NCBI GenBank assembly: GCA_013265495.1
Contig: MU060561.1
Coordinates: 186,001-250,000, forward strand
Origin: Vicugna vicugna
Taxonomy: Eukaryota
Length of the DNA stretch: 64,000 bases
Direction: 5' to 3'
This document shows, piece after piece, positions 811 through 26,368 of the stretch. A program made the position numbers and the translations under genes. Position 1 is the stretch's first letter. Each line of letters starts with the position of its first letter. The notes under the pieces were generated by a model that saw only the letters and a list, made by a program, of their open reading frames with translations, was not told where the DNA came from and did not search any database.

Positions 811-1814
811 CAAAGCATTGTGACCATCCCCATTTTCTGAATCTCAGAAAGGAAATGTATCTCATTGAAGGTCATACAGCCAATAAGTGTCACACTTGAG
901 AGCTGACCCCAAGCCTGGCTGTCCTAGAGCTGTGTTCTCCACCAGTACACAAATGGTGGTACCCAGGGCACCCTGAGAAGCTCCATCAGTGGCCCACACA
1001 CCAAAGCCTCCCCAAATAAACATAGCACCTAAATGAAAGCAGTGTGCCCCCTGGCAATTCCGCTGACTCTCCAGAGCACAGCCCCTAAACCCCAAGCCCT
1101 AACCACGAAGAAATTCTGGAGGCACCACTCAGGCCATCAATGTCAGGATGCCCCGCAAGATAGAACTTCCCAGTTCTCTGGATCTCTGAGGCCCAAACGT
1201 TCTCCACTGATCCATTGCCTCCCCAGGCGGGTATATGCCAAGGAGTGAACAAAAGCTCCTTTCATGGTGACCTGCCCCTTGCCCTTACCATGCCCTGCTT
1301 CCCTCCTCAGCAGCCTAGGAGTCCCAACTTGTTCCTGAGTCTGCCTCAAGGACTCGTTTCACCCATCGGCCTCCTCACCCTCCAGGCCTCCCCAGAAGGG
1401 GCAGCTCCACCATTCAGAGCTGGGGAGACACTCAATGGCTCTCTATGCCTTGCAGCCAGAATGTCACGACCTATCTAGCCTCTTGGGCAACCTCCAGCTG
1501 CCAGCTGACCTGGGCATCCCTGAGGGCTGGGGCCTCTTACTCTGGCACCAGCCATGGCCTCCTGAAGGTTGGCACACTGCCCTCAGCAGATAACAATAAC
1601 ACGTTATGGTCTGCAAGACCTCAGACAGAACATGGCTCCAGTGTTCTGAGTCTGGAAAATGATCTCACGTTAACCCTGTGAACCAAGGTTATTGCCAGTC
1701 CCTTGGTGAAGCGTGGCCTTCTTTTGCTCAAGAACATGAAGTAGCTTCTCATTGGCCTTAAACTCACCTATGCGTTCTTCTGAATGCCCTTCCCTCAGCA
1801 TCCCTCCTACCATC

Positions 1815-2285: not shown

Positions 2286-5200
2286 CATCACTCTCCAGAT
2301 TCTGTTTTGACCAAGGAAGGGAATCTACTCTTTATCCTCTCCATCCAGGTTACCCTTTCCCAACTTTAAGATCTCTTCCCTGCCCTCCCCACCCAGCCCT
2401 GCCTGCCCACTCCTCTTGCTGAATTTTGTTCCTCACAGCTTCCCTCCAAAATCCGTCCACTGCCCAGGCTCTCCTGTTACTTCATTTACTTGTCCAATCC
2501 ACAAGTTGTACCACCAGGCAATGGACTGGGTCTATGGGACAATAGCTAACAGGCTAGTCACCATCTACTGGGGGTCCTTTGCTGGATGCGTGCTTTTCCG
2601 CCCCAGGGTCTGTGTGCATTTTGTCCACTGGTCTCAGTTTGGAGTTCAGTGTGCATTGGGTCCCCAAGCCCACCTTCCTCAGTACCTACTTTCCCTCCAA
2701 CCCCTCCACATCCCCTTGCCCAGGGCTCAGCAGGGGCAGTGCCTGGTGCAGACTGATGCGTGTGGGTCTCACAGCTGAGGGTGGGAAGAACTTGATTGGA
2801 ATAGACCCATCCTTTGCTTGCTATTTGATGAGAGTGAGCCAGTAAGCCATGCCTGCTCCACCGAGGGGCTTGGTGAAGAATACTCCATCTCACCAGGCTC
2901 TGTCCTGTCTTTTTGAGACTATTGGTCTCTCAGCAACTCAAGTGGCCCACTTCCTGGCCAGTTAACCTTCCCCATTGCTGCCTTTGTCCACCTTGGTCTC
3001 TCCCTCCATCCCCTGCCACCTGTAGGTCTCCACACTGGTGAGGCCAAGAAAGGCAAGATAGCAGACTGTCAGGAAGAGTCTCTACCAGCTGATAAAAATG
3101 GATCTGCCCCCGAAGATGACACCACCATCAGTGTCTCCCTGAAGACACTGGCCTGGTGAAAAATGCTGGCCTTTCCCCATGGTCCAGCTGCTTGAGAGGC
3201 AGGCTGTGGACACTCTTTCCCCAGACAGTTCCCAGAGGGCTTTCCCCAGGTGGTATGGGCTCTGTCCATCTGCCCAAAGCCTCACAGCCTTCCTGGTTAG
3301 TGAAGACAGAGAGTGCCTTTGTGTTAGAATTTGGACAGAGATCTAGTCTTGGAGGAGAACGGGGGTTTGCCCGATAGGTCTGTCTCATATGAACTCAGCT
3401 GGGAGCCCAAGTGTAAGACAGCCCTTCCCCTGAAAATAGCTCCAGGCTGCTTGGGAATTCTGCCCTCCCCTTGACCTACACCCTCGTGAGGATTCCCACA
3501 ACCTCTGCCCGCCTCCCCCATCCCTGCGGGGGACTGAGCAGCTGGGTTATGGCTCCTCCCAGGTGAAGGCAGCCCCACTGGAAGTAGAAGGAGCAGAGAA
3601 GGCTCTGTCTTGAGTTGGCTGCGTGTGGAAGCCGACCCAGCACGGACATTCCAACACCCAAGCATCGGGTTCACGTTCCCAAATTGGGCCTCACCTGGTG
3701 AGTCAGCTGGGTAGGCACCTCCGAAAGCCTGCAGCACCATCAATTAGCTGCCTCAGTCTGGTACCCGATTCCAGCTGGGCCTCAGGCTGGATGGCAGATT
3801 GGCCACGTTCTTCAATCTGATGTGCGCAGATCCAGGCTGTGGTTGTTTTCCGTGGACAGGAATCCTGGCGTGGCTGAGGCAGGGTCTGCCTTCAAAAATC
3901 TCCTGAGGGCTGAGGAGGGAACCCCTTCTATCAGGTTTGACAGCAACCAGAACTGGCCTGCAACCGGCCTGTCAAGCATCTCCCCTCAGGCCCCTGGGAA
4001 CAACAGCCAGAAGCTACCTGACCGACTCTGTCCTCCGCCTGCCCCTGAGAACCTTGGTGGTCTCCCTCCCACCTTCCCTTGTTGGAAGGTCACACTGTAC
4101 TTGCCTGGAGGGACCAGAGAGGGCGCCCTTTCCCAGCCCCACTGGGGGTCAGTGAGGGGACACCTGTCCCCAGACCTACAGGCCCATTTCAGACAGGTCT
4201 CATTAGAAGAGAGTTCTTCCTCATCGTGAGCGGAAATCGGCCTCCCTCCAACTTCCGGTTCTGCTCTGTGGAGCTACACAGAAGATCAATTTCACTTTCC
4301 CTTTGGCAAATTTTTTTATTTTGGGGGACATTTCTTAATCACTCTTCCCTCTCTGACTCAGAGGACACTGACTCCCGGGGGGAATAATCTGGTTATATCC
4401 CAAGCTGTCTACACTGCGGTAGCTTGCAGGGCCCTGCACTTCTCACAGCCTTGGGAGCTGACTGTAGCCCCCATGGCCAACCCAACCCTGGGCTAGGATT
4501 TCTGGCCTCTCCAGCCACCTGTTGGCTCCTCTCTAATAATTTATATATGACTTCTTAAACATTTCCCAAACTATAGTCATTCAAGCGACCATCAGGATTT
4601 TGCCCATCTCCAAACCACCTGCATTGTTATTTCCTTTTAATACTTTTTCTTTACTGGTTTGCTTGTTTACCTAGCATATTTATATTATAAGGCAACTTTG
4701 TTAACTACTGAATGACATCTCTTCTAATACATATCAAAATAAGGCCAGGACTACAAAACAGCCTGAAATGATTCTGTGTGCCCGCGACACTAGCTGTCTC
4801 TGCTTTGGAAGCGCAGCCTTAACACATCATGTATTCCAGGGTCCCTCCCCACTCACCTCATCCCCCTCCTCCAGCCTCTGCCCCAGACTCCTCCCTAACA
4901 TGCCTGTGGTTTCCTCCTTCCAAGGGCCTCAGGAGCAGGAATAGACCCTCCCCTCTGTTTCCTGGCTCCCTGAGTCCGTCCTACAGCCATAAAGCTAGGC
5001 CTTGCTCTCTGCTCTTAGGATTCATCTCCTGTCGAGCAGTGAGTGACCCTCCCTCTGTGGCACTTAGGAGAGACGGGGCAGAGGCAATGCCTGGGCCACT
5101 TCACGTTTTCAGAACATCCAGCTGTGATGCCAACAGGTACAGCTGACCCAGAGTCAGGGAGGTGGAGAGTCCATTCTGTAATTACACCATAGAGTGTCTG

Positions 5201-7194: not shown

Positions 7195-7260
7195 TTTCCC
7201 ACCTGCTAGCTGTGTGACCTTGGGCAAGTTACTTAACCTCTCTAAGCCTCAGGTACCTCT
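7195..7260 (+). mobile_element. MIR SINE core
   Basis: ctagctgtgtgaccttgggcaagttacttaacctctctaagcctcag is a near-consensus MIR core. Confidence 0.8.
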
Positions 7261-8030: not shown

Positions 8031-9234
8031 TTGTACCTGACCTTACATCAATCAATAAAAGAGTATTGTATATTTTATTATTATTTGTAAATTGTGTGCT
8101 ACACAGCTTTTATATCAGTTAAACATGATGTACGTGTGTACATATGCACATACATGCATGTGTGTATCTGGATATTTATGTATACACACTTTTTTCAAAA
8201 AGCTATATAGACATTTACCAGCACACCACTGTCTACGACCCTCCTGCACCAGGTCCTGCCCTTTGTGTCACTCGCTGCCCCTCCCCATCCTTCACTTTGT
8301 AAATAAGTAGTTCTCAGCCATGGGACCCTTCTCCAGACCCCGCTTTGTTCCACTCAGGATGCCTCTTTTCAGCCTACTCTCCTCTGGCCCATCCTGGCTC
8401 ACACCCCAGTTTCCCGACACCAGCTCTGAATAGTTAGTCACGGTGCCACGGAGATTCTGTTCCCGGCCTTGGTGCTTAGCCCAAGCCCTGCCTGCCTGCT
8501 CTTGCCCTGAGACCCTCACAGCTGGAAGTCAGCGTTGGCAGTGACTCCTGACACACCTGGCCCTCGGGGATGAAAGGTGGCAGTTCCCAGACCTGTCTCA
8601 GAAAAAAGAGAAAAAGAAAGGAAAAGAGCAAGGCAGAGGGGTGGCTGAGTCGCAGAGAGGAGCGGTGCGGGTGAGTGGTGTTCGGAGCGCTGGGGACACG
8701 GCTCTGCAGGCGTCTTCTTCCCACCATCATTGACAACGGAGCTCGCCTTGGGACAGTTCTGTCCTGAAATCCGCAGAGGAAAACACTGCACCTCCCAGGC
8801 TGTGCCCACCAGGGATCCCAGAGGAAAAGACATCCACCGAGACTACTAACGAATAGGCCAAGGGGCCCTTGAGGGTAAAGTAGCAACTCCTGCTTAAAGT
8901 AAACCACAAACGCGGCAGCATATACGCGTCAGGAGCCAGGCAGGGTTTTAGGAGGAGATTCCGTGGGTTTGGTTCGGGGAAAAGTCCAGGGGCAAAAGCT
9001 CCATTCTGATGCGGAGAAACTGAGAAGGAAGCCATGGTTTCTGAAGACCTTGGCTAGTTCTCCAGGAGAGGCAGTTTCAGAAACGTGGGCTCAAATACAT
9101 CGGTCTAGGGGACAAGGCCAAGAGAGGAGGGGACAAGCACTCCTGCTGCTAGGAAATCAAATTGGGATCAGAGTCCCAGTGCACCCCTAAAAATTACCCG
9201 TGGTTTCCTGGCTATCACCGTCTCTAATAGAAAC

Positions 9235-9375
9235 AGTAAGAATAATAATAGTTAACAGTTATCATGGGCCCAGCATTTTATGTCTCAGTCACAACAATGT
9301 CAGGAGATGGTTATTATGATTCCGGTTTTTGCTGAAAAGAAAGCAGACACAGGGGATGATGCACTTGCTAAGAGC
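9235..9375 (-). mobile_element. MIR SINE
   Basis: aataataatagttaac...ttattatgattccggtttttgctgaaaagaaagcagacacagggga resembles an antisense MIR. Confidence 0.55.
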
Positions 9376-11987
9376 GAAGCCCCCAGGGCGGAGTCTGGGA
9401 CCAGCGCCCGCGCCCCGGGCCCTGCAGCACCACCTCTGCAGGATCACCATCATCATCTCTCCTTTATCCCTCAGCTCAGGCTGTTTTCCCACAGGCTCCC
9501 CCTTTGTTGTTCCTTTTGATGATTTTCTCAATGTCGTGTAGTTGACAGAGTGGCTTTATTCTCATTGTTTGGATGAGGACCTGAGAAAGGAAGCAGTTGT
9601 GCCACACATGCCGAGGCAGGGCCTGCTCTGGGACCAGCTTTCTTTGGTCTGGAGCTAAGGGAGAAAAGTCAGTGCCATGCTGTATATTTCTCGGGGGGCT
9701 GACTTCATTTAACCTCAAGGACTGGACTTGTTCTGAGAGCGTGTCCTTCCTCCTATTAAATTGGTCCTTTCTTTTATGAAATGATGAAGGCAGGAGATGG
9801 TCACTGTTGTCTGTTTTATGTCCCATTTTGGCAACAGAAGAGGCTGGCAGCCCTAGCATCTGATTTGAAACGCTGCTTGGTCGTGGACCCTGGGCCTGGC
9901 ACATCCTGGCTTGCTCGGCGCTGCCTCACCACACACTTCCTCTGGGCAGGGGTGGGGGAATTAACCAAGTGCACCTAAGCTGCTGAGAAAATACGGGTAG
10001 GGCTCAGCCTCCTTCAGCCCTGACTATGGAGAAAGGGGCGTCAGAGAGATGCCTGGGCCCTCCTGCCAGCTGAGGAAGGAACACCCCAGTCTTTCTGGCT
10101 TCAGAGAATGCACTGTCCCCACCAACTCTCATTTTCAAACCTGCCTCAGCCTGCATGGGCCCCCTTTGCCTGACAGTCTATTTGCTTACTCGAGGTGGGG
10201 AGGTGGGGGACCGAACAGGAATCTTCCCACCATCCATCCTTGTCCCAGCCATCCCTCGGGCCATCAGAGCCATGATTCATCCACCTTTTATTTGTCTTGA
10301 GGATTTTCTACGGCAACATTGAGGCCCCTCTTCCCTGGCTTGACTGGATTCCAAGACTATTCAAACAAGCAAACAAGCAAACAAAAAAAATCAGGACCCA
10401 GTGAGGAGAGTGAGTCTCCAGAGGATAAATATATTTTTTTAATTTCTTGTGATGAAAATAATCCTTGGATCATCTATGCTTCTGAATTAGCTGCTTTGTG
10501 GCCTGGTCTTCACTTTTGGATGACTTTTTCTTCCTCTTCTGCTAGCACTGACAGTGGACAGTGATCGGATTCAGTCTAGAATGGGGAGAACAGAAATAAT
10601 TAAGGCAGAGAAAGGGAAACACCTAGACTTGGAAACATCACCTCTCCTCAAGCTGGTGTTGGTAAACCCACAGCTGAATGAGGGAACCTAGAGATTTGGA
10701 CCAGCAGGGTCAGGCTACAGGACCCGAGAATCTTCAGCCCTGAGAGGCAGCTGGTGGGTGAGGCAGACAAGAAATAGTCCTCATTGCTGGGCAAGGTAAC
10801 GCATACGTGGTAAGGAGTCAGAGTCCAGTGTGGCTGGGGTGGGGGTGGGGGGTCAGACATGAAGCAGAACTTTTCTAAGGACAGGCTGTGAGACATGAGG
10901 ACTCGAGCCTCCGCAGAAGGTGCTCAGTAAAAGTGGAGGTGCCTTTGTCAGGGGTGATTGCAGAGGTGGTGGCCGTCTTCTGCTGGATGGACTGGCCATC
11001 ATGCCGATGTCTGGACAAAGGACAGTGCCCAGAAAAGCCAACTTGCATGGCCGGGCCGTCTCCTTCATGCATCTCCAGATCCTTCTAGCTGGTCTAGGAT
11101 TTCATTTTGATGCTTCTGCTCACAGAGCCCTGCCAGCTTCTCCGGATAAACTGCCCACCCCAGTCTGCTTCAGCCCCATTCCCTCCAAAAGCACCCCCGC
11201 TCCGTTACACTTAGCCCACCTCCTCTCAGCCTCTCTCCTCAACCCCTCCTGCTCCTGCTCCAGGGCCAGCACCACCCCACTGCCCTGGCCCCCTCTAGCG
11301 CGGGAGACCAGGACTTCAAGAGGAGCTTGATAAAGGTACTGCCTTGATGACCTCTACCACTGAGGGGATGGGCTTCTATGATTGACAGGTGACAACAGGG
11401 CCATAGCCTCTGCAGGAAGCCTGCAGTTTGTAAAACTGAGACAGGTTACATGGCAACCAGGAAGTGACAAGGGAACCTAGCCCAGTGCCTAGGAACCCAG
11501 AGACATCAGGCTTCAGATGATGGAATATGATGAAAGTTCCAATAGGGAATGGGCAGGGAGCCCGCGGGATGTCAGGGTAGGGTGGGAACAAACACACAGC
11601 AGCTGGGTGGGCAGAGGCAGGTGGTTCCCACACCAGGAGGCGGGATGGTGATGTGGAAAGAGTGTGGGCTTTGGAGAGACAGTGCTCATGGAATCCTGGC
11701 TCCAAACACTGGCTCTGGCGCCCTGGATTTAGCATGTCTATCTCAGGAATAACAACACCTGCCTCAGAGAGAGGTTCCCAGCCCAGGGAGACTCGTCCAC
11801 AGTAGGAGCTCCAAGAACATCAATTTCCAGTCCCTCCCCTTGGAGCTCCACCTGGTACTCTGGGCCTGAAGTACAGGAAGGGGTCTGGGGGATGAGGCTT
11901 CACAGATGAAAAAAAGGAGCTGAGGTCAAGGTCAGGAGGTTTCAGCCCCTCAGCAGGATCTGCAGGTGCGGTGGGGGACCCGTTTTT

Positions 11988-12180
11988 ACTCTCCTTGCCC
12001 TCTAGAGATGTCCTGAGGGTGCCAACATCCCCGTCTACAGCCAGCCTGACTCCCAACAGCCCCTGATAGTCCGCCAGCTGGGCTGCTGCTGTGTCTGGCC
12101 TTTTTGCTGCAGGGGCTTCCAGCAGGGTGTCCCAAGGACCGGCTCCCATCAGTAGCCACAGTGGCAGCCTGCGGGGGTTG
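11988..12180 (-). pseudogene. Relic of keratin exon 7 (helix 2B and termination motif)
   Basis: Translates ...LLEAPAAKRPDTAAAQLADYQGLLGVRLAVDGDVGTLRTSLEGKES. The last 31 aa are 16/31 identical to [31 protein letters not shown] (KRT8-type consensus, from memory) and 12/31 to KRT71 in this window. The 5' part CAG GCT GCC ACT GTG GCT ACT GA resembles the QAAIADAE codons. About 30 nt shorter than the 221-nt exon and the donor GT is lost. Confidence 0.85.
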
Positions 12181-12916
12181 GGGGATGGGCAGTCCACCAG
12201 ATCTTGCTTAGTGCAAATGACGTGCCAGGTACAGGAGTATAAAGGTGAAGACAATTCAGTCCCCGTCACTCGTTTTGGGAGAGGTGATGAAAGGGATGAG
12301 TAAGGTGGGTAGGGGAGCAGAGACAAGGTCTCAGAAGGCAAGGGACACTTGCCAAGTATCATAGGCCTTCACTATCTGCATTTGAGGAAAGGAATACATT
12401 CCTCTCTCTCCTCTTCTCCCATAATCATGGCCAACCACAGCACCTCTACCCCTGAGATGGCCCCCAGCCCTGTTCTTGCCCCTCATGCCCACTCCAGGCT
12501 CCCTCTTGCACAAGCCATTCTATCCAGTGGAGCTTTCCAGCTGTTTCCAGGGCTGCCTTGGGCCAGTCTCCAGCCCAAGAGATGCTCCAGCATCTCCATC
12601 ACACTTGGTGATTGATCTGATATTTCAGTTCCTCTCTGCAGTCTCAGTGACTGGGTGTCAGGTGGGCCTCCCCTGCTCACCCCCTTCCCACTGTGGGAGC
12701 CCATTTAACGTGTCTTGGGCCCTGATCTGGCCCTTTAGTCAGAATGCGACACAGCTCCGTGCCCTGCAGCTTTCTTGGCTCCCACTCTGGGCTCAGCCTC
12801 TACGAGCGAGTGCATCTCACACTTTATTCCTCTGCACCAGTTATTCCTGTACCTGTACCCTTCCTGAGTGGCTCCTCCTGCCTGTAGGACCAGAAGCTTC
12901 CTGACTGCAGGGACTA

Positions 12917-13050
12917 TGACTTGCTTTCTCTTTCTCCTGCATCCACTCCACAGAGCATCACTTCGATGTGAGGAAGGCAGTAAATTGGGACAGATGTGGA
13001 GGCAGGACTTGAGGCTCATCACAATGCCCTTCCACCCCTGGGATCAGCTC
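12917..13050 (-). pseudogene. Possible relic of keratin exon 6
   Basis: GAG CTG ... GGG CAT TGT GAT GAG CCTC resembles EL...(R)HGDDL, and about 125 nt later AGA AAG CAA GTC resembles KKQ|GT. It sits between the exon 5 and exon 7 relics, but the similarity is weak. Confidence 0.3.
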
Positions 13051-13289
13051 CCTTCCTGCCCCTCACCCTCTGCTTATGCGCATGCCCCACCCCCACACCA
13101 TCGCTCAGCACATGGCCATGCCTTTTATTTGACACACAAAAAACTAGGCTCTTAGGTATGAGCTTTCTCAGCTCTCCATCCCCATGTCCCTTTAAGAGCT
13201 CATCCTGCCCTCTGTGGTCCCTAGATCCCATCGCTACTCCCTTATTCCAAGACCTTCCTATGTTGGCTGGAATTTGAACCTCTTTCTCC

Positions 13290-13960
13290 ACTGATCACGT
13301 TCCTGGAGACTCTAAATAACGCACTGTGTGCACTCATTACTCTCTACCTCCTGCCGCATCTCTCTTTTTCCCTTCATGGTCTAGTTGACTCTGACCCATC
13401 CCACTCCCATTTCAATAGGCCTTCTGCCCAACTCTTGCCGGAGCCCACTTGGGTGAGGTCCCCTCCCACCCTCATCATTAGACCCAAAGCCATCTTTTGG
13501 ATCTTGCCCTTTCTTGGCCTTTCTGCAGATTAGTCCCTCTTGATCCATTTCTTCACCCTAAGAATTTTTCCTTTCTTGATTCCCAAATGCCCTCTCCTGT
13601 TCTCCGACTCTCTCTCTGACTACTCCTCCCCAGTCTCCTTTCCCTTTGCCCCAGGGCTCTGTTCTAGACCCTGTAATGATCTCTCTGGGTGTGCCCTCTG
13701 GCCCCCAATTCTGATTGCCAAATCTGAATCCCAGCCCTGACCTTTCTTTTGAAAAAATCCAATAACTTACTGACCATCTCCCCTTGACAATACTACAGGC
13801 ACCTCCAACTCGGCTTCTCCAAGCCTGAACTCCACATCTTCCTTTCAGAACCCAATCCTCTTCCTATATTCCCTTTCCCTGTAAATGGTGTTACTGCCCA
13901 TCACCTAAGCTAGAAACCCCAGTGTCTTCCTGGACACTTATCCCTCAACTACCCACCGTC
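13290..13960 (+). mobile_element. L2 LINE fragment, inside the relic keratin gene
   Basis: acaggcacctccaactc...cctgaactccacatcttcc...aagctagaaaccccagtgtcttcctggacac resembles the L2 3' region. Confidence 0.6.
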
Positions 13961-14284
13961 ACTATGGTGGGCAGCCTCCAAGGTGGCCCCTGGTGATTCT
14001 TGTCCTCTCTCCTCTCCCTGAGAAGAGTCCCAGCCCCTCGGGGAAATGGCCAACTGCCCAGATGAAACTTACACTGTAGGGAAACTTAACAAATTTCCAG
14101 TGAAGAAGCTGAAGGAAAACAGAGTCCAAATATGGACACTGCTCTGGATATAAATGCCCTTCATCCCTTCCCTCTGGGCTTGGCTCTCTCAGTAAAATCT
14201 CCTGCTGGGACTTAGTAGCCAAGTTGGAGCAGAAATAGTTCAGTTTTCAGAGAATTTAATTCTGTCATGTTAGATGGGACCTTG

Positions 14285-14450
14285 AATGCCACTCAAAGTG
14301 AAGTTCAAGGACCAGCAGCATCAACTTGACCTACAAGCTCGGTTGAAGTGCAGACTCTTAGGCCCCAGCTGGTCCTGCTGAAACATAAGGTGCATTTTAG
14401 CAAGACTCCCAGAAGACTGATACGCCAATGAAAGCGTGAGAAGCATTGGT
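14285..14450 (+). mobile_element. hAT-Charlie MITE (MER5A-like)
   Basis: ctcaaagtg...ggaccagcagcatca...tgcagactcttaggcccca...gcattttagcaagactcccag...tgagaagcattg follows the MER5 layout. Confidence 0.7.
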
Positions 14451-14884
14451 CTGATCAAACTGTCCATCCAACTCTCAAGTGCTCTATAATATCAGAATTT
14501 GTTCTTGAGTATCTCCTGTGATGGCAAACACCCTATCTCTTAACGCAGCCCATCCCATCTTGAGTATGGTTTCCATCAGTCCTCAATGTACAGGTCCCCC
14601 ACTTTGCCCTTGTCCTCGGCTTCCCCACGTCCCATCCCTTACTTTCACCCTCTCATGGCTCCAGGGACTCAATACCTCTATCAATCACTCCAGGAATTCA
14701 CTCCAAGCCCAAACCCATAGAATCCCACTGAGAAGGTCAAGGGGGATCCCGTTTCAGTGAATTTCCTGCCCAATTTTTATTAATCTTCCTGCCTAGTGTC
14801 TTTTAAGCCTGGATTTTAGTACTATTGACCTTTGTCTTGGAGTTCTCAGAAGGCAGAGGGAGCCCAGCCAGAGAACACTGTGGG

Positions 14885-15027
14885 GGCCTCCTGGTCTTCC
14901 AGGGCCTGGGCCTCCCTCCCCCGGACCATGTTCTCCTACTGGGATGACGCAGCCAGGTCCACCAGCTGCTTATTGCCCATGGACAGGAACACGGATGTGT
15001 CTGAGGCCCAGTCCTGCTGGTCCCCTT
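14885..15027 (-). pseudogene. Relic of keratin exon 5 (L12 linker and coil 2A)
   Basis: After acceptor ctttgcag at 15028 it reads TCA GAC ACA TCC GTG TTC CTG TCC ATG GGC AAT AAG CAG CTG GTG GAC CTG (SDTSVFLSMGNKQLVDL versus [17 protein letters not shown]). Then a deletion, then CAG TAG GAG AAC ATG, where the Tyr of QYEE has become a stop, then GAG GCC CAG GCC (EAQA versus EAEA). Confidence 0.85.
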
Positions 15028-15439
15028 CTGCAAAGTGGCGGGAAGCCCAGCCCTAGGCTAACAGGCCAGCTCTCTGCACACAGCAGCACGAGGAACACCC
15101 TGACACTTCACACTCTGGGTGCACATGAGCAGGCCTTTGCCCTGTTGGTGCTCATACCAGCTGGCTTTGGGCATCCAGCAGGAATTGTTATGACAGGTAG
15201 TAATAGCCCAGAAGCAGTGGATTTGGGGTCAGCGGCTTGGGCCAGGCACCGTCACGTACCCCTTCAGTTTCAGCATATATGAGTGGGAAATGGGCGTGAG
15301 GTGTGATCCTTGGGGCAGGGGTGGGGATGGAAGCGGCTCAGCAGCAGAGGAAAATGAAGCCCCTGTTAACCCAAAGGTCACCTACAGGCCCGTGTCGTCC
15401 AGGCAGAGATCAGGACCGGCTCAGTCGAGACTCCCAGGG

Positions 15440-15533
15440 CCAGCCCCAATGCGACCCCTGGAAGCAGGTCTCCTGCACAGCCCTTCCAACTGGGCCTCCA
15501 CTTCCACCCTCCGAGTGAAGGCTCCTCCACACT
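15440..15533 (-). pseudogene. Relic of keratin exon 4 (coil 1B)
   Basis: Polypyrimidine acceptor gtccttcctaccctcag, then AGT GTG GAG GAG -CC TTC ACT CGG AGG GTG GAA GTG GAG GCC CAG TTG GAA GGG CTG TG- CAG GAG ACC TGC TTC. This gives SVEEAFTRRVEVEAQLEGLxQETCF versus [25 protein letters not shown], with two 1-nt deletions. Confidence 0.75.
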
Positions 15534-16152
15534 CTGAGGGTAGGAAGGACCATGGGCCTCATCCCTACAACCACGTGAACCAGCATCTCTTCCTCTGCCT
15601 CGGATGCCTCCAGAGACCCTGTCCCTTCCCTCTGCTCCTCCCGAACAGAGGGAAGGAACTGAATAGAGGGAGCAGAGGCCTGATTGGGGAAGAACTGACT
15701 GGCTATACACAGTATACCTTCTGGCTTCCCCAGACAACTCTACCCTACCTCCTACCACACCTCATGCTGCCTCCTCCCCCCACCCCCCTGATGTGATACA
15801 GGCCCACCTGCACCCCTCCACCCCACTGATGCCATTGAATGCTGCCAAGTGCTCGCCTCTGTCTGACTGTCCAGCAGCCCCTCTGCTCCCGAGACTACAC
15901 AGGTCCCTAATCTGCCCACCGTGGGCAGGACCCCTTGCCAGTATTGGAGACCAGTGCCATCCTGCCATGGGTGTGTTGGAAAGAGCACAGGACTTTGGGG
16001 TCTTAGCCTGGCTCTGCCCCTGACAACCTAGGTGAATTTAGACAAGATCCCTGTTCCTCCCTGGGTCTCAGTTCCTTCACTGGTGAAATAGAGAGGCCCC
16101 TGCTGCAATACAGAGGGCCCCCCACATCAGGATGCAGGAGCTGTGTGAGGAC

Positions 16153-16210
16153 CCAGGGCAGCACTGAGCCCTCTTCCACATTCACCCTGCAGTAGATGTC
16201 CTCCTGGAAC
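16153..16210 (-). pseudogene. Relic of keratin exon 3
   Basis: Acceptor ctcctccttcctggcag, then G TTC CAG GAG GAC ATC TAC TGC AGG GTG AAT GTG GAA GAG GGC TCA GTG CTG (G+FQEDIYCRVNVEEGSVL versus G+[17 protein letters not shown]). Same splice phase as the real 61-nt exon, and a GT follows after 58 nt. Confidence 0.65.
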
Positions 16211-17010
16211 CTGCCAGGAAGGAGGAGCAGGCAGGTGGCAGCACTGCCAAGGGCAAGCTCCTGTCCAGACTCACATGCTGGAGCCAGAGCCCTGCCCCCA
16301 CTCTCCACCTCAGCCCCCTAAAATTAGGCAGGCAAGCCACAGGGCACCTTTGGGGTCTTCTCCAGCCCAGGGTGCTTGTTGATAGATGGGTGACCTGATA
16401 AACAATCTTTTTGTCTGCAAAAGAGCAGCAGCATCCTTCTGTCACTCTCAGCACTGTTTAGACAATGGATGTGAACGTACTTGGCAACTGCAAAGCCACA
16501 TGTGGACACCGACAAGAGAGGGAATCATGTACCGCCACTCCCTCCACCCGTGGCCATGGCAGGCATTACTAATCCATCAGTCCTTCCTCCCCTCTGGATC
16601 CTGGATCCACACCCTAGGCCAGTGGCTCCTTAGAATTCCTTCACTAGCCTTCAAAAGATACCAATGAAACGTGGGCCCCACCCAGTAGCCTGACTTAATC
16701 AGCTTGGAGGAGAGGCTCAGGTATCAGTATGTTTTGAAGTTTCCAGGTTATTTTTCAACTGATGTAAAGAACCACTGCTCTTGGCAACCACAATCCAATG
16801 ACCACGTAGATTCATGTAACATAGTGGCTGCCCCTCCACCTCCATTGCTAGAAACCCCTCGGGCCTCCAAGGACTTCCTGGCTGAGGTTTGCTGGCTCAC
16901 ACTGGTCGCTGGGGAATCTGTCCATCTGTCCTCACACCTCTCCTCACCACAGGGCAGGACTGGCTAACTGCATCATCACTAAATTTCACAGCCCGCCCCA
17001 CCCCCAACTC

Positions 17011-17257
17011 ACTCCTCCTCAGTCTAGCTTCAGGTTCCAAGAAGTTGTTCCCTTAGATTTTCTAGCAGAAGGGTCCAGTGCATGGGGCCCCCCACAGCTC
17101 CACCTGTCCTGGGTGACCCCCCGGGAGGCCAGGTCTCTGAAAGTGAGGAGCAAGTGGAATAAATGCAGACACCTGTCCATCAAGCCCCTACCTTTCCTCT
17201 AGGAAAGATCCAGTTCTTATAAAGAGGCCAGGGTTCCTGTTGGGAGCAGGACCCCTT
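17011..17257 (-). pseudogene. Possible relic of keratin exon 2
   Basis: After an AG at 17259-17258 there are patchy matches in the expected order: GGGTCCTG..CAACAGGAAC ~ CGGTTCCTGGAGCAGCAGAAC, AACTGGATC ~ AAGTGGAGC, CAGGTGGAG-CTGTGGG ~ CAGCTGGAGACTCTGGG, ACTTC..GAAC ~ GACTTCAAGAAC, and a GTGAG near 17010. Length is compatible with exon 2. Confidence 0.4.
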
Positions 17258-17620
17258 CTGCCAGTGGACACAGGTAACACTTCTGTTGAAAGCCACAAAC
17301 CAGACCTCACACACACCTCTCCGTGCTTTTCCGTTCCTCTCTCCCCACCCTTTCTCCATCCCTCTTCTCAAACTCTGCTCCGCACTTCATCTCCCTGCAG
17401 CCCCGATGGTACTCACAGCCCCTCTGCCGTGTGTGCTCTGAAAGCTTCTTTTTCTGCTTTACAGAGAAGATTACCCTTGAAATATGGGGTGTACAGGCGA
17501 CACGCAGCGCTGTTCTGTGTGTGTCCGGGTGGCTGTGTGATACTTGTTCATGTGAGCAGGTGAACTGAGGTACACGTGCACACCTTGATTACTCAGAGAC
17601 CAAGCCATCAGACTCTGCTG

Positions 17621-17626
17621 TTTATT
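17621..17626 (-). terminator. KRT71 polyadenylation signal (AATAAA)
   Basis: TTTATT on the plus strand about 600 nt downstream of the KRT71 stop, followed on the minus strand by a GT-rich tract. Confidence 0.7.
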
Positions 17627-18219
17627 GAGGATGCAGTGGGAGGGCCTTTAAGAAGAAAGGAGAAAGGAACGGGCCTCCTCTTCTCTGCTTGTGGATGCAG
17701 GAGAGGGGAGAAAGAGACCCTGGGTTGCACTTGGTCCACTCAGAATGAGCCGCGAGACAGCCAGGGTGGGGTGTGGATGGCCTCGCCTGGTCATTTACCC
17801 TCCAGCCCTCTTTTTCCTGAACACAGAACCAGCTCCCCTCATGGGGCAGGAGCTGGGACAAAGGCCCCAGTGTGAAAGGGGGTCTCAGTCTGAGATCCAT
17901 GGAGCCAGACAGAGTAATTAGCAACTGAGCCAGAAGCTGTGCAGAGGACAGAAGGCTGGGAACCAGGGGCTGCGCTGGTGGCATGGCTGGGGGACCACAG
18001 CCAAGGAGGCAAACACCAGCTGGTGCAGAGAGGAATTTCACCAAGCTTAGTCGTCCACACCATCCAGGCTGGGGAAGACACAGGTTGGGAGGAGTAGGTG
18101 GCCAAGTCCAGCACCAGAGGTACAAGAGCAGGGCTGGCAGGGTTGGGGTAGGGCTGACAGTGGCTGGGGGAGCCAGATGCGGGACACAGGGACGGCGGAG
18201 GGGCATGGGGCAGCCCTCT

Positions 18220-21200
18220 CTACCGACTGGCCTTCTTGGAGGGGGCGCTCAGGCTGGAGCCCTTCCCCAGGGCATCCTTGGAGTCGCTGGTGCTGCTCCG
18301 GCTCCGGCCCTCCCCACCGCGGACACTGCACACTCCGGAGATGCAGCTGCTGCTGTTGGCCACGTAGCCTCCGCTGACCGAGCTGGGCCGGTAGCCATAG
18401 CCAGCGCTGCCGCTGGTGCTGCTGATGATGGCTGCAGGGGAGAGAGCAGGGTCAGCTCTCCACAGGCAGAGCGGGAGGCAGGGCCAGAGGAGGCCACCTT
18501 GCCCCTTGGAAAGATGGGGCTCTTCTTGGAACAATGGATTGGATGGGGGATCTGGTCATAGCCAAGCCTCTCTGCATTGGGAAAAATATCTCAGAGACAG
18601 CTTCCCCCATGCCCTGCCCTTGTCTTGCCCAGCTTGTACCCAATCTAGCTCATTCTTAACTCGCAGAAGTCCATCTCTTTGGTTTAGGTACCGATAGACC
18701 TGCCTGTCATGCTGGACACTCCTTCCTCTTCTATTAGCCTTTCTTTTCCTAAACTTCCCACCCTCCGACCTCTCCGTCCTGCCAGCCGTTCTACAGATGG
18801 CATCTTTCAGAAGCTCTGATTGAATTCTTAGCCTTGCTGAGATACCCAGAGAGCTAACACTGTCAACTTGACCTCCGAGGTACCCCATTCACTAATTCCC
18901 CAGCCCAGGTCTGATCACAGGTCTGGCTTCCCAAGCCTCACACACACCCATGCTCATTTTCTTGCACCATGTCCTTTGATTTCCCATCCCCATGATAATA
19001 TCCTTGTAGCCGCCATCCCCTGGAAACAGGGAGACCGAGTCATAAGGGGGAAGGAGCCCTGGGTTGAGAATCAGAAGGCCTGATTGCTGGCCATGCCTCT
19101 GCCATCTGGCTGTGTGATCTCAGGCAAAGTTTTTCCCTCTCTGGTCCTTAGATTGCTCATCTACACACGCAAGGTGTAACTAAGGCCCTCTACGGTCCAC
19201 AGATTCTACAGTTTTAGGTCCAAGTGTACAAGTACTTACAGATGCTGACGGGGGAGGGAAATTCTCCTGACATCCTGTTAGGGGAGAAATAAAATAAGAG
19301 CAGTTATCCAACCCACAGTCTATTAACCTCAAAGCGAGTGCCCCCACCAGCCTAATGTGGGTTTCTGAACTCAGTGGGAAGCCATGAAAATTCCAGGGCT
19401 TCTTTGGCACAAGCAGAGCTTGAGAAACTGTGGGGCCCCCTGAACCTTTGGGGTAACCAGGCAATAATTGAAATAAAACAGTTGTTCTCCTAGGAGCACA
19501 TGTGGGGGTGGCATGTACACCTCCCAAGGGTCAGGCCCAGCCACTGAGCCCTTCCTTCTTCCTAGAACATTGGGGAGTTGGAGTGGCTTCTCTGGGACAT
19601 CTCTGACAAGCTCATCTTGTATCCAGACAGGTAAGGAAGGTAGGACAAAAAGGCCTAATATAGTAATGGGTTTTTCTGGGGCGGGGAGAGATGGAGGAGT
19701 GGAGGGTGGGAATGTGCCCAGGTCCACACAGGGAAGTCATGAGGAATAAATGAGCCAATCCACATAGCACACTGCCTGGTATGAAGTAAGCTCTCATGTC
19801 TGGGTAGGTATTATTGATTACTGTTATTATTTCTAGCATCATTACTCATTCTCTTCCCTAAAACTCATCTTTTCTGATGAGTTTTGACCCTTCCCAAACC
19901 CTTGGAGCCTTCCTGCCAGAGCTTCCCCCCTCACCGGCACTCCTCGCTCTCCAGCAGCTTGCGGTAGGTGGCGATCTCCATGTCCAGGGCCAGCTTCAGG
20001 CTCATGAGCTCCTGGTACTCACGCAGCATCCGAGCCAGCTCCTCCTTGCCCTGGTGCAGGGCAGCCTCCAGCTCATCCAGCTTGGCCCGGGCGTCCTTCA
20101 GGGCATTGTCCCCCCGCTGCTCGGCATCAGCAATGGCCGTCTCCAGATTGGAAGCCTAAATGGGGAATTGGAGAAGTTGGAACCTGGAAGGGCTCATTGG
20201 AGTCATGCACATCCAAATCCTACTCATTCTTTGAAATTCTGGGGCAGAGATGCCCACCTCCACCCTTCTGACCCCATGATCCTCTTCTAGATTGGAGCCC
20301 CTTCCTTAGCTTTATCTCCACTCCCTTGGGTTTGGACATTGGTGGTGATGAACAATAGTGCATTCTGCCCTCCTGAGATGATGGCCAGCTTAGCACCACT
20401 TTAGTTCATTACAAATTCATTTACCTGGCCACCTTGTGCTAAGGACACAAAATGAGGAAAAGTAAACTTGACCTTCTGCTCTTGAGCTGTTTAAAGCCCA
20501 GGAGGATCGATCACTGGGATACAGTGTCGCAGGCACAGCAGTGACTGCCCCGATGCATGGGACCATAGACAAGGGCACCGGGAAGGCAATTCTCTAGGAC
20601 CAACTATTATTTCCCAAGTGCTTACCATACACCTGACACTGTGCTCAGCCCTACACATGCCCTTTATATACCTTAGCTCATCCAGTCCTAACAACACCCA
20701 ATGCAGTAGGGACAAGTAACTTGCCCAAGGTCCCAGAGCTATGGAGAGTTAAAACCCATGGGAGAGTGGAAAAAGCACTGGACTGGGAGCTAAGAGACCT
20801 TGGTTCAGGTCACACTCTGCCACTTATTGCTGTGCAACCCACTCAACCTCTCTGAGCCTCAGTTTCCTTCTCTGTAACAATTTAATCAGAAAATGTTTAT
20901 TAAGCAGCTAGTATGTGCTAGGCCCTGTACTAGATGCTGTGAAAACAATGGGAGAAAATCAGCCAGCTCCCTGCCTCCCTCCAGTCCAGCGGAAGAAGGA
21001 AAGACAGGTGCTGGGCAGTTATAGAAGCGTGACAAGTGCAGGGGAGGCATGGGTGCTGGGAGAGCACATTGATCGGGTCAGGAAGGGCAGAGGGATGTGG
21101 TCCTAGCTCACTCTGGGTGATGAGAGAAGGCTTTCTGGGGGAGGGGGCTTCAAAGCAGAGATCCTTGGGGTGAACAGCAGATGAGGTGCCCCAGGGACCT

Positions 21201-24200
21201 TTGCTGTAAGGGTTTGATGCAGTGACCCCTTTGGCTCCTTTCCTCTCATCAGCAGAGATCTGGGAGGCTGGCGTCCTCGGCCCGCTCCTCCCCTCTCCAC
21301 TTGTGCCTGCCTGCCCGAGGCCACAGGCAATTGGTCACCTCACCTGCTTCTTCACATTCTCAATCTCTGAGCGGATCCTCTGGATGAGCCGAGTGAGCTC
21401 CGAGATCTCGTTCTTGGTGTTTTTGAGGTCATCCCCATGCCGGCCGGCCGCCAGCTGCAGCTCCTGGAACTGGAGACCCAAAGCGCAGTCATGGATGGGT
21501 CCCATGTGGTGGGCGTGCATGGTGGCTCGCGGCTGGTGATGCCATGCGGGCAGGCCATGCTGGACATGTAACTGGACACTGCCTCCGCTCTGGGAACGAT
21601 CAGCACCATCCCTCATGCCAGCTGAGGTCGCCACCCTTCCTGGCAGGCCTTTAGTCCAGCTCACCTTGGTCTGGTACAGCGCCTCGGCCTCGGCCTTGCT
21701 CTTGAGGGCGATTTCCTCGTACTGGGCACGGACCTCATCAATGATGCTGTCCAGGTTCAGGTCCCGGTTGTTGTCCATGGACAGGATGACAGACATGTCG
21801 CTGATGTGGGACTGGATCTGAGCGATCTCCTACAGGGGAAACAGGGACGGTCTTGGGACTTGACTGTCAGAGGCCTGCAACCTCCCCCAAGCAAGGTGAG
21901 CAAATCCTGGTGGTGCCAATTTAGAGGCTCCAAACCAAGGCTGTTGCTCCCTGGGCAAAGTCAGTTCCTTCTGGGCCCCAGACAGATTTCCATCACCATG
22001 AAGCCAGGACCTGGGCCATTTCCTTCTCACCCAGAGGGTGGAGATGAAGAGCCTCTCAGGGTCGAAATGGAGATGAAGAGCTGAGCAGGTAAGCCTCCCT
22101 CAGGTCCCGGGTGCCCCTCCCAACCCCAGAATAGAATTTTCCCCACTGACCACCCTCAGAGGGATGGGTGGAGGGACAGACTTACGGCTTCATAGAGACA
22201 CTTGAAGAACTTGATCTCCTGGTCCATGGAGTCCACCTTGGCCTGCAGCTCCACCTTATTGGCATAAGCCGCATCCACATCCTGAAAGATGCCCCAGCCA
22301 TCCCCAGATCAATGCTGGTGCAGCCAAGAAGGCAACATGCACCCCAGCCTGGGTCCCCTGCATGGGAAAATAGCCACCTCTTCTCTTTGGGAAGCTCATG
22401 GAAAAGGGGAGGACAGAGCAAAAGCCCCAGCCCTGCCCCATCCTAAGAATGGGCTCCCTCCACAGCAGGGATGGGTCCTCCTCTAAGGAAGGGAAGCTGT
22501 CAGTCACCCCTGTGACTTCCAAGCAAGGCCCCAAGGCTGCAGAGGGAGCCCGTGTGTCGTCCTCTGTTGTTCCTCACTGCAGTCAACCCCATCCTCATTA
22601 AATTCTCAAGGATGCCTTTATCCTCTCTGCTGTTTTAGTCCCTTCCCTGGATAGTCCTACACTGTGGTTTTCCCCTGCCTTCCTTTTCTATTTCTGGATC
22701 AGGTCACCTTCTTTGAGAGGAGAGCATGCCAGCAGGCTCAGCTCCTCCTGGTCCTGGACCAGCCCCAGACCAGGGCCTGCCCACCCCTCACCTTCTTGAG
22801 CAGCACAAACTCGTTCTCTGCAGCCGTCCGCCTGTTGATTTCTTCCTCGTACCTGTGGGAATATTGGGACTCAATCGGTTAATTCGTCTCACTGGGAACC
22901 CTCGTTTGCCCAGGAAGACCCTGAGCAAGGGCAGTGTGTCTGTCAGAGGGCGCAGGTGCTGAGGGGCTGCAGAGTCCAAGGCCAGTGGGGCCAACCAGGC
23001 AAGGGAGACTTCCAGGAGGAAGGGATGTGATCATCAAATTTGGAAGGAGACTGTGAAAGATCCAGCCTCAAAAATGAGGAAGGAGCATGTGGTGCAAATG
23101 TCCTGTGGGAAATCTCACATTTGTCCCAAGTGCCAGGCTGTAGGAGCAGGAAGCAAGTTCCAGTGTTGGGGGGGTGATGACTCTGCTTGGTATGAGGAAC
23201 ACTGCCCCCACCTCCAAAAACTTTAAACTGGGGGAGCTTCTGGTGCCCCAAGGGGCCCACTCCTGTGGGATGAGCTCAGAGGCATTGGGCAGTCATGCAG
23301 TTACAGGGGGTCCCCGCTCACCTCTTCTTGTAGTCCTCCACCACGTCCCGCACGTTCCTCAGCTCCGAGTCCAGTCTCACCCTGTCCCCGGACAGCGCCT
23401 CCAGCTGCTTCCGCAGGTTGCCGATGTAGCCCTCGAGGATGGGCTCCAGGTGGTTCTTGCAGTTGTTCAGGTCCAGCTGCTGCAGCAGCTCCCACTTGGT
23501 CTCCAGCACCTGGTTCTGCTGCTCCAGGAACCGCACCTGGAACCCAACACCCATCAGTGCTGAGCCCCACGGAAACAGTCACACCTGTCACTCCCTGGGG
23601 GCTGGACAAATAGCTCTCCCCATGTCTTCTCCTTTACCCCTCACAACAACCACCTGAGGTGGGTGAATCATTAATCCTGCTTCATGGGAAGGAAACTGAG
23701 GCAGAGAGTTGAGCCTCTTTCCAAGGTCCAACGGTTTAATAAGTGGTGGAGATCAGAACTAAACCCAGACATGTATCTCCATCACCCATGCAACTGGTCA
23801 CTTGGAACCCACCATGACCAAACCAGCCCAGGTCAGGAGTGGGCCTGAAAATGCCAGGGCAGAGTCGGGCTGGGTCCATCTTTGGAAAGGCTGACCATTC
23901 TGAAGAAGGGAATCTGCTCTTCATTTTATATCATCTCAAGCTCAGCCAGGCTCAACAGTTCACGAGCTTCTGAGTATCCTAAATTCCGGCATCGGGCCCC
24001 AACTCCATCTTTGCTATGGCCTCTTCCTTCTTTCCTAGTCCTGCTCCTCAGAACCATCTTCCCTAGAGCAAGCATATCACACGGAGCAAGATGGACAGAC
24101 AGACCTCCCCATGCTATGTGGCCTCACTGGGCCAGGAAACTCACTAGAGAAGGTAGATCTTTGATTGCAGGGGTGGCAATTTAAAAAATGTGATTTCCCT

Positions 24201-26368
24201 TAATCCTACATGAGCACAGCTACTGGTTAAATAAGGTTGTTTTCCTTAAAGTTAAAACACAGGACATTGGAAAACTGTCTGGGATTCAGTGTTGTGATGG
24301 GATTGGCCACCAAACAGCCTGTCTCCAGGAGACCAACCAGGTTTGGTTTAACCAGTCCTGAGTTTTTCCATGTCTGTCCATGAGACTTAGCACTGACCAC
24401 AGAGAAAACCCTGCACCCAGGACACCGCAGTACACATTCGGACTCCACATCCAGATGCAGACAGGATGCACCCATCTTCTCTGGCTGCCTCGGTTTATGG
24501 GATTGTCCTCCTCTAGAGACTAAAATTATTTGGGAACTCTCCAGGCCTTTGAGCCTGCTTCCTCCCACCCAAGGCAGACCACCGTTTCCACAGAAGTAAC
24601 TGTCTTCTTGTTTGTCTTTCTTTCCATGTCTCCAGACTTTACTTCTTAATGAGATTGGACCAGCCCAGCCAAAGGTCAGTTCTCTCCTATCCTCCCAGAC
24701 TCCAAACCTCAGAACACTGTGCTCCTCTAGATGTGAAAAAGCTTAGAGGTAAGAGGCTACAGAGACCATTCAGGGCCATCAGGGAATCCTCTGAGCAGGA
24801 GTCTGGAGCTGGGGGGGCGGGGGCCTGACCGCCACTGACCATCTCAATAAGCCATGTCCTGGGCTGACCCATTCTTGATGCCTGACTGTCATGTAATCAG
24901 CGTAGCCCTCCAGTCCCCAGTACTGGGTCTGGAAGCAGGAGGCTGAGTGTCCAGCCTCACCTGCCCTTCCCTACGAGATGACCTTGGGCACGGCATTACC
25001 TCCACTCTTTTGCGGACCCGCAAAATGGGAGCAATTATTTTTTATCACCAAAAGTCAAGCGCCTGTGAGACCTCTTCCAGACCTTTGATTCCTCTCCTTC
25101 TCAACACCCCTCCCCTAGCTCTCAGAGATAGAAATGATAATCACAATGACTGCCGTCTGAGGAGTACTTAGCATGTGTCAGGTGTTGTGCCAAGATCTTC
25201 ATACACATTTTCTTTCATGAACCTGACAATGACCCCAAGAGGTAGATTATTATCTCCACTGTAGACATGAGGAAACATGGGCACAGACGGGATGAATGCC
25301 TCTCCCCACAGTCACACAGCTTGGTATGTGGCCAGCTTAGCTACCAGAGTCACACAGCTGATAAGTGATGGGGCCACGGTCAAAGGCAGGTCTGACTTTG
25401 GGGCTCTGTGGAGTCCTCTTCTCCATCACACTGTTCTGCCTCTCGTGGGAGTCCTTAGCTGAACAAAACTAATGCCAGTGGCCAAGCCACCCATGAAGAC
25501 CATACACTGATGCTTCCAATCCAGCAGTCAAATGACAAGTGGACGAGATCAGCCTGCAACATACGGGAGGAGGACAGCGTCCCTGGTCACTCTGGAACAG
25601 ATCCCCGTGGCTGGCTTTTTCTGTAGCCAGCCTGCATGAGCCCCAGCTTAGCTATGGCGGCAAGCCAGCCCTCAAGGGTAAGAAGCAGGGGCCTTCTCTT
25701 TGGAGCTCCTGCCAGTAGAAACTGACCTACCTCTGTCTTCTCACAAGAAAGACTACACAGGGAATCTTGCATAAGTCACTCTGAGGATAGGAAGTAGCTG
25801 CCTTGTCCACCGTAAGTGCCTCCTCATTTCTAACCCAATCCCTTCTGCTGCAACAAAAGTTTGTGTTCAAGAAGAAAAGAGAAGGGCTGTCCACAGTTCC
25901 CCCAGGTCCTAGCAGACCCACCTTATCGATGAAGGAGGCGAACTTGTTGTTCAGAGCCTTGATCTGCTCCCGCTCCTGCGCCCGCACTTTCTGGATCTCG
26001 GGGTCCAGCTCCACGTTGAGCGGGGCTAGGAGGCTCTCGTTGACGGTGACCTGGTGGATGCCTCCAGGCGAGCACACAGTCGGGCACACAGGTCCCAGGG
26101 CCACACTGCCAAACATGCTGCCAGCAAAGCCGCTGGCCCGGCCCCGGCCAAATCCATACCCTCCGCTCTTCCCGCTGCCGCTGGCCAGGTTGAGGGTGAT
26201 GCTCCGGACGCCGCCCAGGTTGTACAGGCTCCGGCTTCCGAAGCCTCCGCTGAGCCCTTTGCCCCCTACCCTGTAGGAGGACGAGCTGCCCCCCGAGAGC
26301 ACAGCCGAGCAGCCACTGAAGCCCCCCTTGGCAGCAGCTCCCGACTTGCAGGTGAATTGGCGGCTCAT
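18220..26368 (-). CDS. KRT71: Keratin, type II cytoskeletal 71 (K6irs1), complete 9-exon gene, about 525 aa
   Basis: Exons read on the minus strand: 26368-25922 (447), 23536-23322 (215), 22852-22792 (61), 22281-22186 (96), 21829-21665 (165), 21469-21344 (126), 20155-19935 (221), 19274-19240 (35), 18431-18220 (212, ends TAG). All junctions are GT-AG and the total of 1578 nt is in frame. Head [27 protein letters not shown], helix-initiation [11 protein letters not shown], helix-termination [14 protein letters not shown] and tail ...[12 protein letters not shown] match KRT71 as I recall it. Confidence 0.96.
20760..20880 (+). mobile_element. MIR SINE (KRT71 intron 6)
   Basis: ctctgccacttattgctgtg...aacctctctgagcctcagtttccttctctgtaa. 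Confidence 0.7.
23640..23790 (-). mobile_element. MIR SINE (KRT71 intron 1)
   Basis: ctcacaacaaccacctgagg...gaaggaaactgaggcagagag...ccaaggtc is an antisense MIR. Confidence 0.65.
25150..25400 (-). mobile_element. MIR SINE (KRT71 intron 1)
   Basis: gtacttagcatgtgtcaggtgttgtgccaag...attattatctccactgtagacatgaggaaacatgggcacag...ccacagtcacacagct. Confidence 0.65.

Follow-up and report, generated by a model that had tools for sequence, protein, structure and literature searches.

The stretch analyzed here, 64,000 nucleotides (nt) of the Vicugna vicugna genome (contig MU060561.1, positions 186,001 to 250,000; in the following the window), is part of the mammalian type II keratin cluster and contains three intact keratin genes, all encoded on the minus strand. 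Within the 18 kb downstream of one of them, the hair-follicle keratin gene KRT71 (K6irs1), and on the side facing the basal-epidermal gene KRT5, the remnants of a further keratin gene were found, which are referred to as relic 1 (11988-16210, minus strand). KRT71 itself belongs to the inner-root-sheath (IRS) block KRT71-74. Relic 1 is very probably an unprocessed type II keratin pseudogene 3′ of KRT71, which was dead before the ancestor of the placental mammals and has evolved neutrally since. It is homologous to and collinear with type II keratin exons, it has orthologues across the placentals with which it shares a frame-shifting lesion, and its exons change at a neutral rate.

Exon remnants of relic 1

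Four remnants are preserved in the window:

16153..16210, minus strand: relic 1 exon 3 remnant, FQEDIYCRVNVEEGSVLPW; AG acceptor and pyrimidine tract kept; phase as in KRT71 exon 3
15440..15533, minus strand: relic 1 exon 4 remnant, ..AFTRRVEVEAQLEGL..; acceptor AG at 15535-15534
14885..15028, minus strand: relic 1 exon 5 remnant, SDTSVFLSMGNKQLVDL; deletions of 7, 1 and 14 nt; TAC>TAG stop at 14938-14936
11988..12180, minus strand: relic 1 exon 7 remnant, ..LEAPAAKRPDTAAAQLADYQGLLGVRLAVDGDVGTLRTSLEGKES; end of coil 2B; 23-nt deficit common to placentals

The remnants follow the layout of type II keratin genes, in which exons 3, 4, 5 and 7 measure 61, 96, 165 and 221 nt: phases, order and spacing agree, the spacers between the remnants are intron-like (0.4-2.7 kb), and the type II motif SDTSV.LSM.N can be read as SDTSVFLSMGNK. 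A preliminary description of the window had pointed out four minus-strand rod segments (exons 3, 4, 5 and 7) in the right order together with surviving AG acceptors. The best matches of the exon models described below indeed fall on these coordinates, and the acceptor AGs of relic exons 3, 4 and 5 match the functional KRT71 acceptors base for base. The apparent exon 7 acceptor at 12183-12181 was rejected as not ancestral, being a by-product of an additional 14-nt loss at the 5′ end of this exon, which is specific to this species; in other mammals exon 7 starts 14 nt further upstream, after a proper CAG. Amino-acid identity reaches about 35-40% in the best-kept exon.

No intact head-rod-tail open reading frame (ORF) was found: exon 5 carries a TAG in place of the TAC in the ...AQYEE... 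codons, exons 5 and 7 contain frame-shifting deletions, and exons 1 and 2 are deleted. Despite its type II keratin homology, relic 1 thus has to be classified as a pseudogene and not as a gene, as had been proposed from the frameshifts and the TAG. Since introns and splice phases are retained, it is an unprocessed pseudogene and not a retrocopy. Relic 1 presumably began as an ordinary gene with introns in the tandem type II keratin cluster.

For the search, DNA profile models (nhmmer) of exons 2-7 with short flanks were built solely from the three intact genes of the window and run against window positions 1-17700 on both strands. The top matches were obtained at 16224-16190 for the exon 3 model (expectation value E 0.05), at 15544-15468 for exon 4 (E 0.17), at 15001-14902 for exon 5 (E 1e-8) and at 12078-11990 for exon 7 (E 5e-5). 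When the keratin ORFs of the window were used as tblastn queries, exon 7 was matched from all three paralogues (E 1e-6) and exon 5 at E 0.02. Furthermore, 26 full-length type II keratins were taken from a library of 1.8 billion proteins, 23 of which matched exon 7 (best E 6e-8) and nine exon 5. The preliminary description had proposed such a tblastn search as well as one with the Pfam Filament profile (PF00038), and the latter likewise matched exon 7 over its last 39 positions (274-312 of 313) with an E of 0.001, below the gathering score as expected for a fragment. No Pfam match was obtained for the exon 3, 4 and 5 pieces, because the general intermediate-filament profile is too broad for short decayed pieces. 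Protein hidden Markov models (HMMs) of the individual exons gave E values of 3.9e-6 for exon 7 and 1.1e-3 for exon 5, with exon 4 top-ranked at 0.44.

The collinear chain of exons 3, 4, 5 and 7 amounts to 57.4 bits. For comparison, 100 dinucleotide-preserving shuffles resulted in a mean of 10.8 bits (standard deviation 3.4) and a maximum of 23.4 bits, and the reversed sequence reached 6.3 bits; a collinear score at the level of such controls, by which the preliminary description would have considered its call refuted, was not observed. The other intergenic spacers of the window (KRT71-KRT74 and KRT74-gene C, the latter being the third intact gene) contained no relic matches at E values up to 1. 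In the window, neither the DNA nor the protein exon models rose above noise when exons 1, 2 and 6 of relic 1 were sought. Consequently, the weak exon 2 and exon 6 candidates of the preliminary description had to be abandoned; the relics of exons 1 and 2 are deleted in this lineage.

Placental orthologues and age of inactivation

KRT71 loci with 10 kb flanks were compared from sheep (L002), armadillo (L005), manatee (L006), orangutan (L010) and rabbit (L011), and furthermore from opossum (L008), wombat (L009), Dromiciops (L012) and platypus (L004), together with an IRS-type keratin locus of echidna (L007). Window positions 18200-8000 are collinear with the KRT71 downstream flanks of sheep, armadillo, manatee and orangutan at 65-76% identity, and the rabbit flank shows shorter collinear matches. 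At the matching places, sheep, manatee and armadillo contain exons 3, 4 and 7 of relic 1, and sheep contains exon 5 as well; exons 3 and 7 were found in orangutan and exons 4 and 7 in rabbit. Among the exon 3 copies, that of manatee keeps the terminal ...AAGAAG (KK), and that of armadillo reads ...CTGCTG..AAAG followed by GT.

A lesion shared among the placental relics lies in exon 7. The codons for AIAD and LEAAL are spaced by 54 nt in functional genes, vs 31 nt in the relics of the window, sheep, orangutan and manatee and 30 nt in that of armadillo. This deficit of 23-24 nt is frame-shifting, forms a common 23-column alignment gap and occurs in every placental copy except that of rabbit, i.e. 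in five of six; across the respective stretch the rabbit sequence could not be aligned. The carriers span Laurasiatheria, Euarchontoglires (orangutan), Afrotheria and Xenarthra. Since a frame-shifting 23-nt loss is common to four superorders, the gene was already dead in the placental ancestor. Window and sheep additionally have the exon 5 lesions in common, i.e. the 7-, 1- and 14-nt deletions and the TAG. In none of the eight therian assemblies fetched was a coding gene called in the downstream 10 kb of KRT71. The alignment across placentals suggested in the preliminary description has yielded a shared lesion, and its view of an ancient lost cluster member that ORF-based annotation misses is corroborated by an orthologous relic without any gene call.

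Relic 1 thus lost its function before the last common ancestor of the living placentals and has since undergone neutral drift, in which different pieces were removed per lineage. For Vicugna such a removal is visible as follows:

16828..16832, no strand assigned: deletion scar; a 772-nt segment of sheep is absent here; blastn high-scoring segment pairs break at 16832/16828 vs sheep L002 19003/19775

The 772-nt sheep segment (L002 19003-19775) holds the end of exon 1 and the start of exon 2 of relic 1. The exon 1 end (L002 19101-19241) reads ..QEVTIGQ..FASLVDK followed by a GTGAGG donor (..TTQEVTIGQGFQAALNQEVNATFQQVWVEEGQADQDSEASFASLVDK; protein HMM E 9e-4), and the exon 2 start (L002 19544-19610) reads VRFLEQQ... 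As these pieces fall between window positions 16832 and 16828, they were deleted in this camelid. The orangutan likewise retains ..LNDMFASLVDK and the start of exon 2 (nhmmer E 2e-4), and armadillo shows a weaker exon 2-like sequence at the deletion point. Orangutan lacks ~3.5 kb matching window positions 16109-12615 (exons 4-6), at L010 21664-21721, so that exons 1, 2, 3 and 7 remain, and in rabbit most of relic 1 is gone. Over all placentals, exons 1, 2, 3, 4, 5 and 7 of one gene are recognizable.

Parent gene and competing explanations

Motifs of type II keratins are found in several copies of relic 1, namely SDTSV.LSM.N in the window, QEVTIGQ...FASLVDK (followed by gt) and VRFLEQQ in sheep, and LNDMFASLVDK in orangutan. 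With KRT71 and KRT72-74 relic 1 has the sizes and phases of exons 3, 4, 5 and 7, the strand and the adjacent position in common. In contrast, the states of the IRS subfamily (an H1 site of the HQVT type, a C/A-S/A/T-NLE start of exon 7 and an EGEECR end) were not found in relic 1, a comparison that comprises two or three sites only. The H1 site of the sheep orthologue reads QEVT, whereas the IRS-named keratins in the set show HQVT or close variants and never QE, and relic 1 exon 7 ends in EGEES(K/R), whereas the IRS genes of the window end in ECR or ECW; unlike KRT71-74, relic 1 has no open frame. The few diagnostic residues hint at a non-IRS epithelial keratin as the parent gene. Among the epidermal type II keratins such as KRT1, KRT2 and KRT77, human K1, with QEVT in H1, an Asn in the exon 3 motif (..KRTNAENEF..) and an EGEESR rod end, would display the same three states as relic 1; the reference set contained no mammalian K1 or K2 sequences, and this likeness is regarded as a lead only.

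The relic 1 exons are 61-83% identical to those of sheep, compared to 75% for the flanks, and similar patterns were obtained vs orangutan, manatee and armadillo. The relic exons are thus no better conserved than their flanks, indicating neutral evolution since the death of the gene. Relic 1 has no evident present function, and consequently its value is historical and not mechanistic. One might still consider that relic 1 is dead as a coding unit while its remains were co-opted as a regulatory element or as an exon of a long non-coding RNA of the KRT71/KRT5 neighborhood, given that keratin clusters are densely regulated and that one RNA-labelled metagenomic run yields low-depth contigs from a close relative that partly cover the region. 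These contigs, however, are unspliced and scattered over exon and non-exon parts alike, no Rfam family matches at relic 1, whole exons were deleted independently in camelid, orangutan and rabbit, and the exons have not been held more constant than the DNA around them. Such a co-option is therefore considered quite improbable.

Two further explanations were weighed against that of an ancient pseudogene, and both of them retain next to no credibility. GC-rich intergenic DNA may by chance translate into a few keratin-like peptides, and in favor of this idea the exon 3 and 4 matches are short and individually non-significant, and many spurious tblastn matches (E 0.001-0.02) occur in the same region. 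The chain score, however, far exceeds the reversed control and every one of the 100 shuffles, exons 5 and 7 reach significance singly by both DNA and protein profiles, and the orthologous DNA of other mammals holds further exons (1 and 2) which are absent from the window. The shuffles and the comparison between species thus refute chance resemblance. A young duplicate of KRT71 or of another IRS keratin, confined to one lineage and rapidly decayed in camelids, would agree with the position of relic 1 next to KRT71 and with its detection by models made from IRS keratin exons. It is practically irreconcilable with orthologous relics in sheep, orangutan, rabbit, manatee and armadillo and one lesion in five of six copies, and the QEVT and EGEES states described above likewise speak against an IRS origin.

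Several points nevertheless weigh against the interpretation of relic 1 as an ancient pseudogene of a non-IRS keratin that had gone unrecorded. The matches to exons 3 and 4 are individually weak and draw their support from position, phase and cross-species agreement. Exon 6 was found in no species, and exons 8 and 9, which were neither modelled nor searched, were not recovered. As regards RNA, three transcriptome runs contained no sequence of the organism, and of the indexed RNA runs a single metagenomic library covers the region. With regard to the parent gene, summed tblastn scores of 182 type II keratins vs all relic pieces of all species do not separate the subfamilies, the difference among all type II classes being <3% and the top 30 lying within 4%. 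Finally, relic 1 is apparently uncatalogued on the basis of one 2017 catalogue and full-text searches, not of current browser pseudogene tracks.

Marsupial counterparts, a second relic and the setting of the interval

In wombat and Dromiciops an exon 3 relic was found ~4 kb downstream of KRT71 (RYEVEIHRKANAENGFL and SYEARINRRANVENDFL), followed 5 kb further, across DNA rich in short interspersed nuclear elements, by the second half of exon 4, LDLDTLANEIKIL[RK]ALYEV with subsequent GTAA (nhmmer E 1e-8 and 2e-10):

wombat L009 26889-26931 and 31595-31651: marsupial relic exons 3 and 4
Dromiciops L012 25825-25871 and 30862-30918: marsupial relic exons 3 and 4

The two species share their lesions: exon 3 is truncated at its end, and stop codons interrupt the first half of exon 4, so that the marsupial relic is a pseudogene in both of them. 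The KRT71 downstream flank of opossum contained no convincing relic. At exon 3 position 10 the marsupial and the placental relics carry an Asn codon (AAT), a residue absent from this position in all of the ~290 type II keratins whose exon 3 pattern could be located. This shared codon together with the position suggests that the marsupial relic is the orthologue of relic 1. In the two exons that can be compared, no lesion unites marsupials and placentals, and exon 4 has survived much better in the marsupials (27.7 vs 5.3 bits); a therian gene that was still functional and was lost independently in both groups is therefore a plausible assumption. The same observations would fit a separate, marsupial-specific dead duplicate, and the gene could then be younger than the therian ancestor. 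Since the marsupial pieces are likewise positioned as the first keratin-like sequence to follow KRT71 on its 3′ side, and carry the unusual Asn as well, we consider a separate duplicate rather unlikely.

In platypus the annotated KRT71 (P0235) is followed 5 kb on by an IRS-type gene of 553 amino acids (MSRQFNCKS.., L004 24775-29660). By position, this gene is the better KRT71 counterpart and the annotated KRT71 corresponds to KRT74. Platypus and echidna have at least four IRS-type keratin genes in a row with one further keratin gene before them, the products of all these genes together comprising 549, 550, 526, 535/539 and 553 amino acids.

Closer to KRT5 the window contains remnants of another keratin gene, denoted relic 2:

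1371..1579, minus strand: relic 2 exon 7 remnant, nearly full length; CANLQEAMAGA....LEGEE preceded by cag; nhmmer E 1e-7, model positions 13-231 of 242
3818..3911, minus strand: relic 2 exon 5 remnant; nhmmer E 7e-6; frame-shifted reading S..LS.ENN.SLDL
5633-5590, minus strand: possible exon 2 of relic 2, weak; nhmmer E 0.15

The chain of exons 5 and 7 with the weak exon 2 reaches 48.6 bits, compared to the shuffle maximum of 23.4 bits, and is invisible to tblastn because of the frame shifts. Relic 2 is a second, independent dead keratin gene nearer KRT5, spanning ~1371-3911 and possibly extending to 5633. The motif CANLQ occurs in seven proteins of the set, of which three are from birds (two annotated as K5-like) and none is named an IRS keratin, and by its residues relic 2 looks K5/K6-like. 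The preliminary description had assumed one fossil gene between KRT71 and KRT5; the fossil is real, and the interval contains two of them. Given two relics, the KRT5-KRT71 interval once contained two more keratin genes.

A weak piece at 6346-6420 on the minus strand resembles the start of exon 7 (NHNPQAA*KIAHLQGSLCYKDALQR vs NANLQAAIAEAEERGELALKDARQK; tblastn E 0.77). As neither profile supported it, no claim is made for this piece, which may belong to a third relic or have arisen by chance. In the same interval, 61 nt at window 7199-7259 are 84% identical to platypus DNA downstream of an IRS gene and have four matches in the wombat flank, and this stretch is probably an old interspersed repeat.

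Regarding named pseudogenes, the 2006 nomenclature (Schweizer et al., PMC2064177) and the 2017 dog/horse/human catalogue (Balmer et al., PMC5573215) list eight human type II keratin pseudogenes (KRT87P-90P and KRT125P-128P). According to the supplement of the latter, KRT125P, 126P and 128P are located at human chr12 52.63-52.74 Mb, while the gap from the end of KRT5 (52.520 Mb) to the start of KRT71 (52.544 Mb) contains no catalogue entry (PMC5573215). By map position relic 1 is therefore none of the named human pseudogenes with readable coordinates: KRT125P, 126P and 128P lie between KRT73 and KRT3 and not in the KRT5-KRT71 gap. The question raised in the preliminary description, whether a named pseudogene maps to this site, is thereby answered for these three, the coordinates of KRT127P not being displayed in the supplement. 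Full-text literature searching found no pseudogene between KRT5 and KRT71.

The unprocessed epithelial type II pseudogenes KRT125P-KRT128P of the human 12q13.13 cluster resemble relic 1 as intron-containing dead type II copies within the cluster, in the orientation of their neighbors, that arose and died by tandem birth and death (PMC2064177; PMC5573215). An unprocessed pseudogene in a tandem cluster is of an ordinary kind; relic 1 stands out by being so old, by being accompanied by a second relic and by lying at the border of the IRS block. KRT126, KRT127 and KRT128 are still intact in dog or horse, which means that these human pseudogenes died recently, whereas relic 1 was broken before the placentals diverged and is far more eroded, with whole exons missing.

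Keratin clusters are classic examples of gene birth and death in connection with skin and hair evolution, and to our knowledge keratin catalogues comprise intact genes and fairly young pseudogenes only. At least one lost gene of the KRT5-KRT71 interval was dead before the placental radiation, with a probable trace in marsupials as well. The relics thus provide a physical marker from which the ancestral mammalian type II array, and what it lost when the IRS genes arose, may be reconstructed, and exon-model scans combined with synteny recover gene fossils ~100 million years old which ORF-based annotation misses. It is possible, if on the whole doubtful, that two extra functional type II genes separated KRT71 from KRT5 in the therian ancestor, an epidermal-type gene (QEVT / Asn-exon 3 / EGEESR) and a K5-like gene (CANLQ / EGEECR). 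The first would have been lost independently, before crown Placentalia and later before crown Australidelphia, and intact monotreme or sauropsid orthologues may survive. If so, it would become possible to date and to test whether the hair-specific IRS block originated by being inserted into an epidermal keratin array of greater age.

The three intact genes of the window are:

18194..26368, minus strand: KRT71 (gene A), intact; exon 1 ATG at 26368; aligned exon 9 end at ~18194, true stop slightly beyond
~44696-37842, minus strand: KRT74 (gene B), intact; exon 5 with 100% identity to annotated Vicugna pacos KRT74
from ~61400, extending past the window edge, minus strand: gene C, KRT72/73-like, intact

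The spliced exons 1-7 of KRT71 are 96% identical to the KRT71 of sheep and warthog. The rod end of KRT74 (exon 7 end, window 39034-39056) reads EGEECW vs the near-invariant EGEECR, and the same W is present at the rod end of the annotated Vicugna pacos KRT74 protein (P0197).

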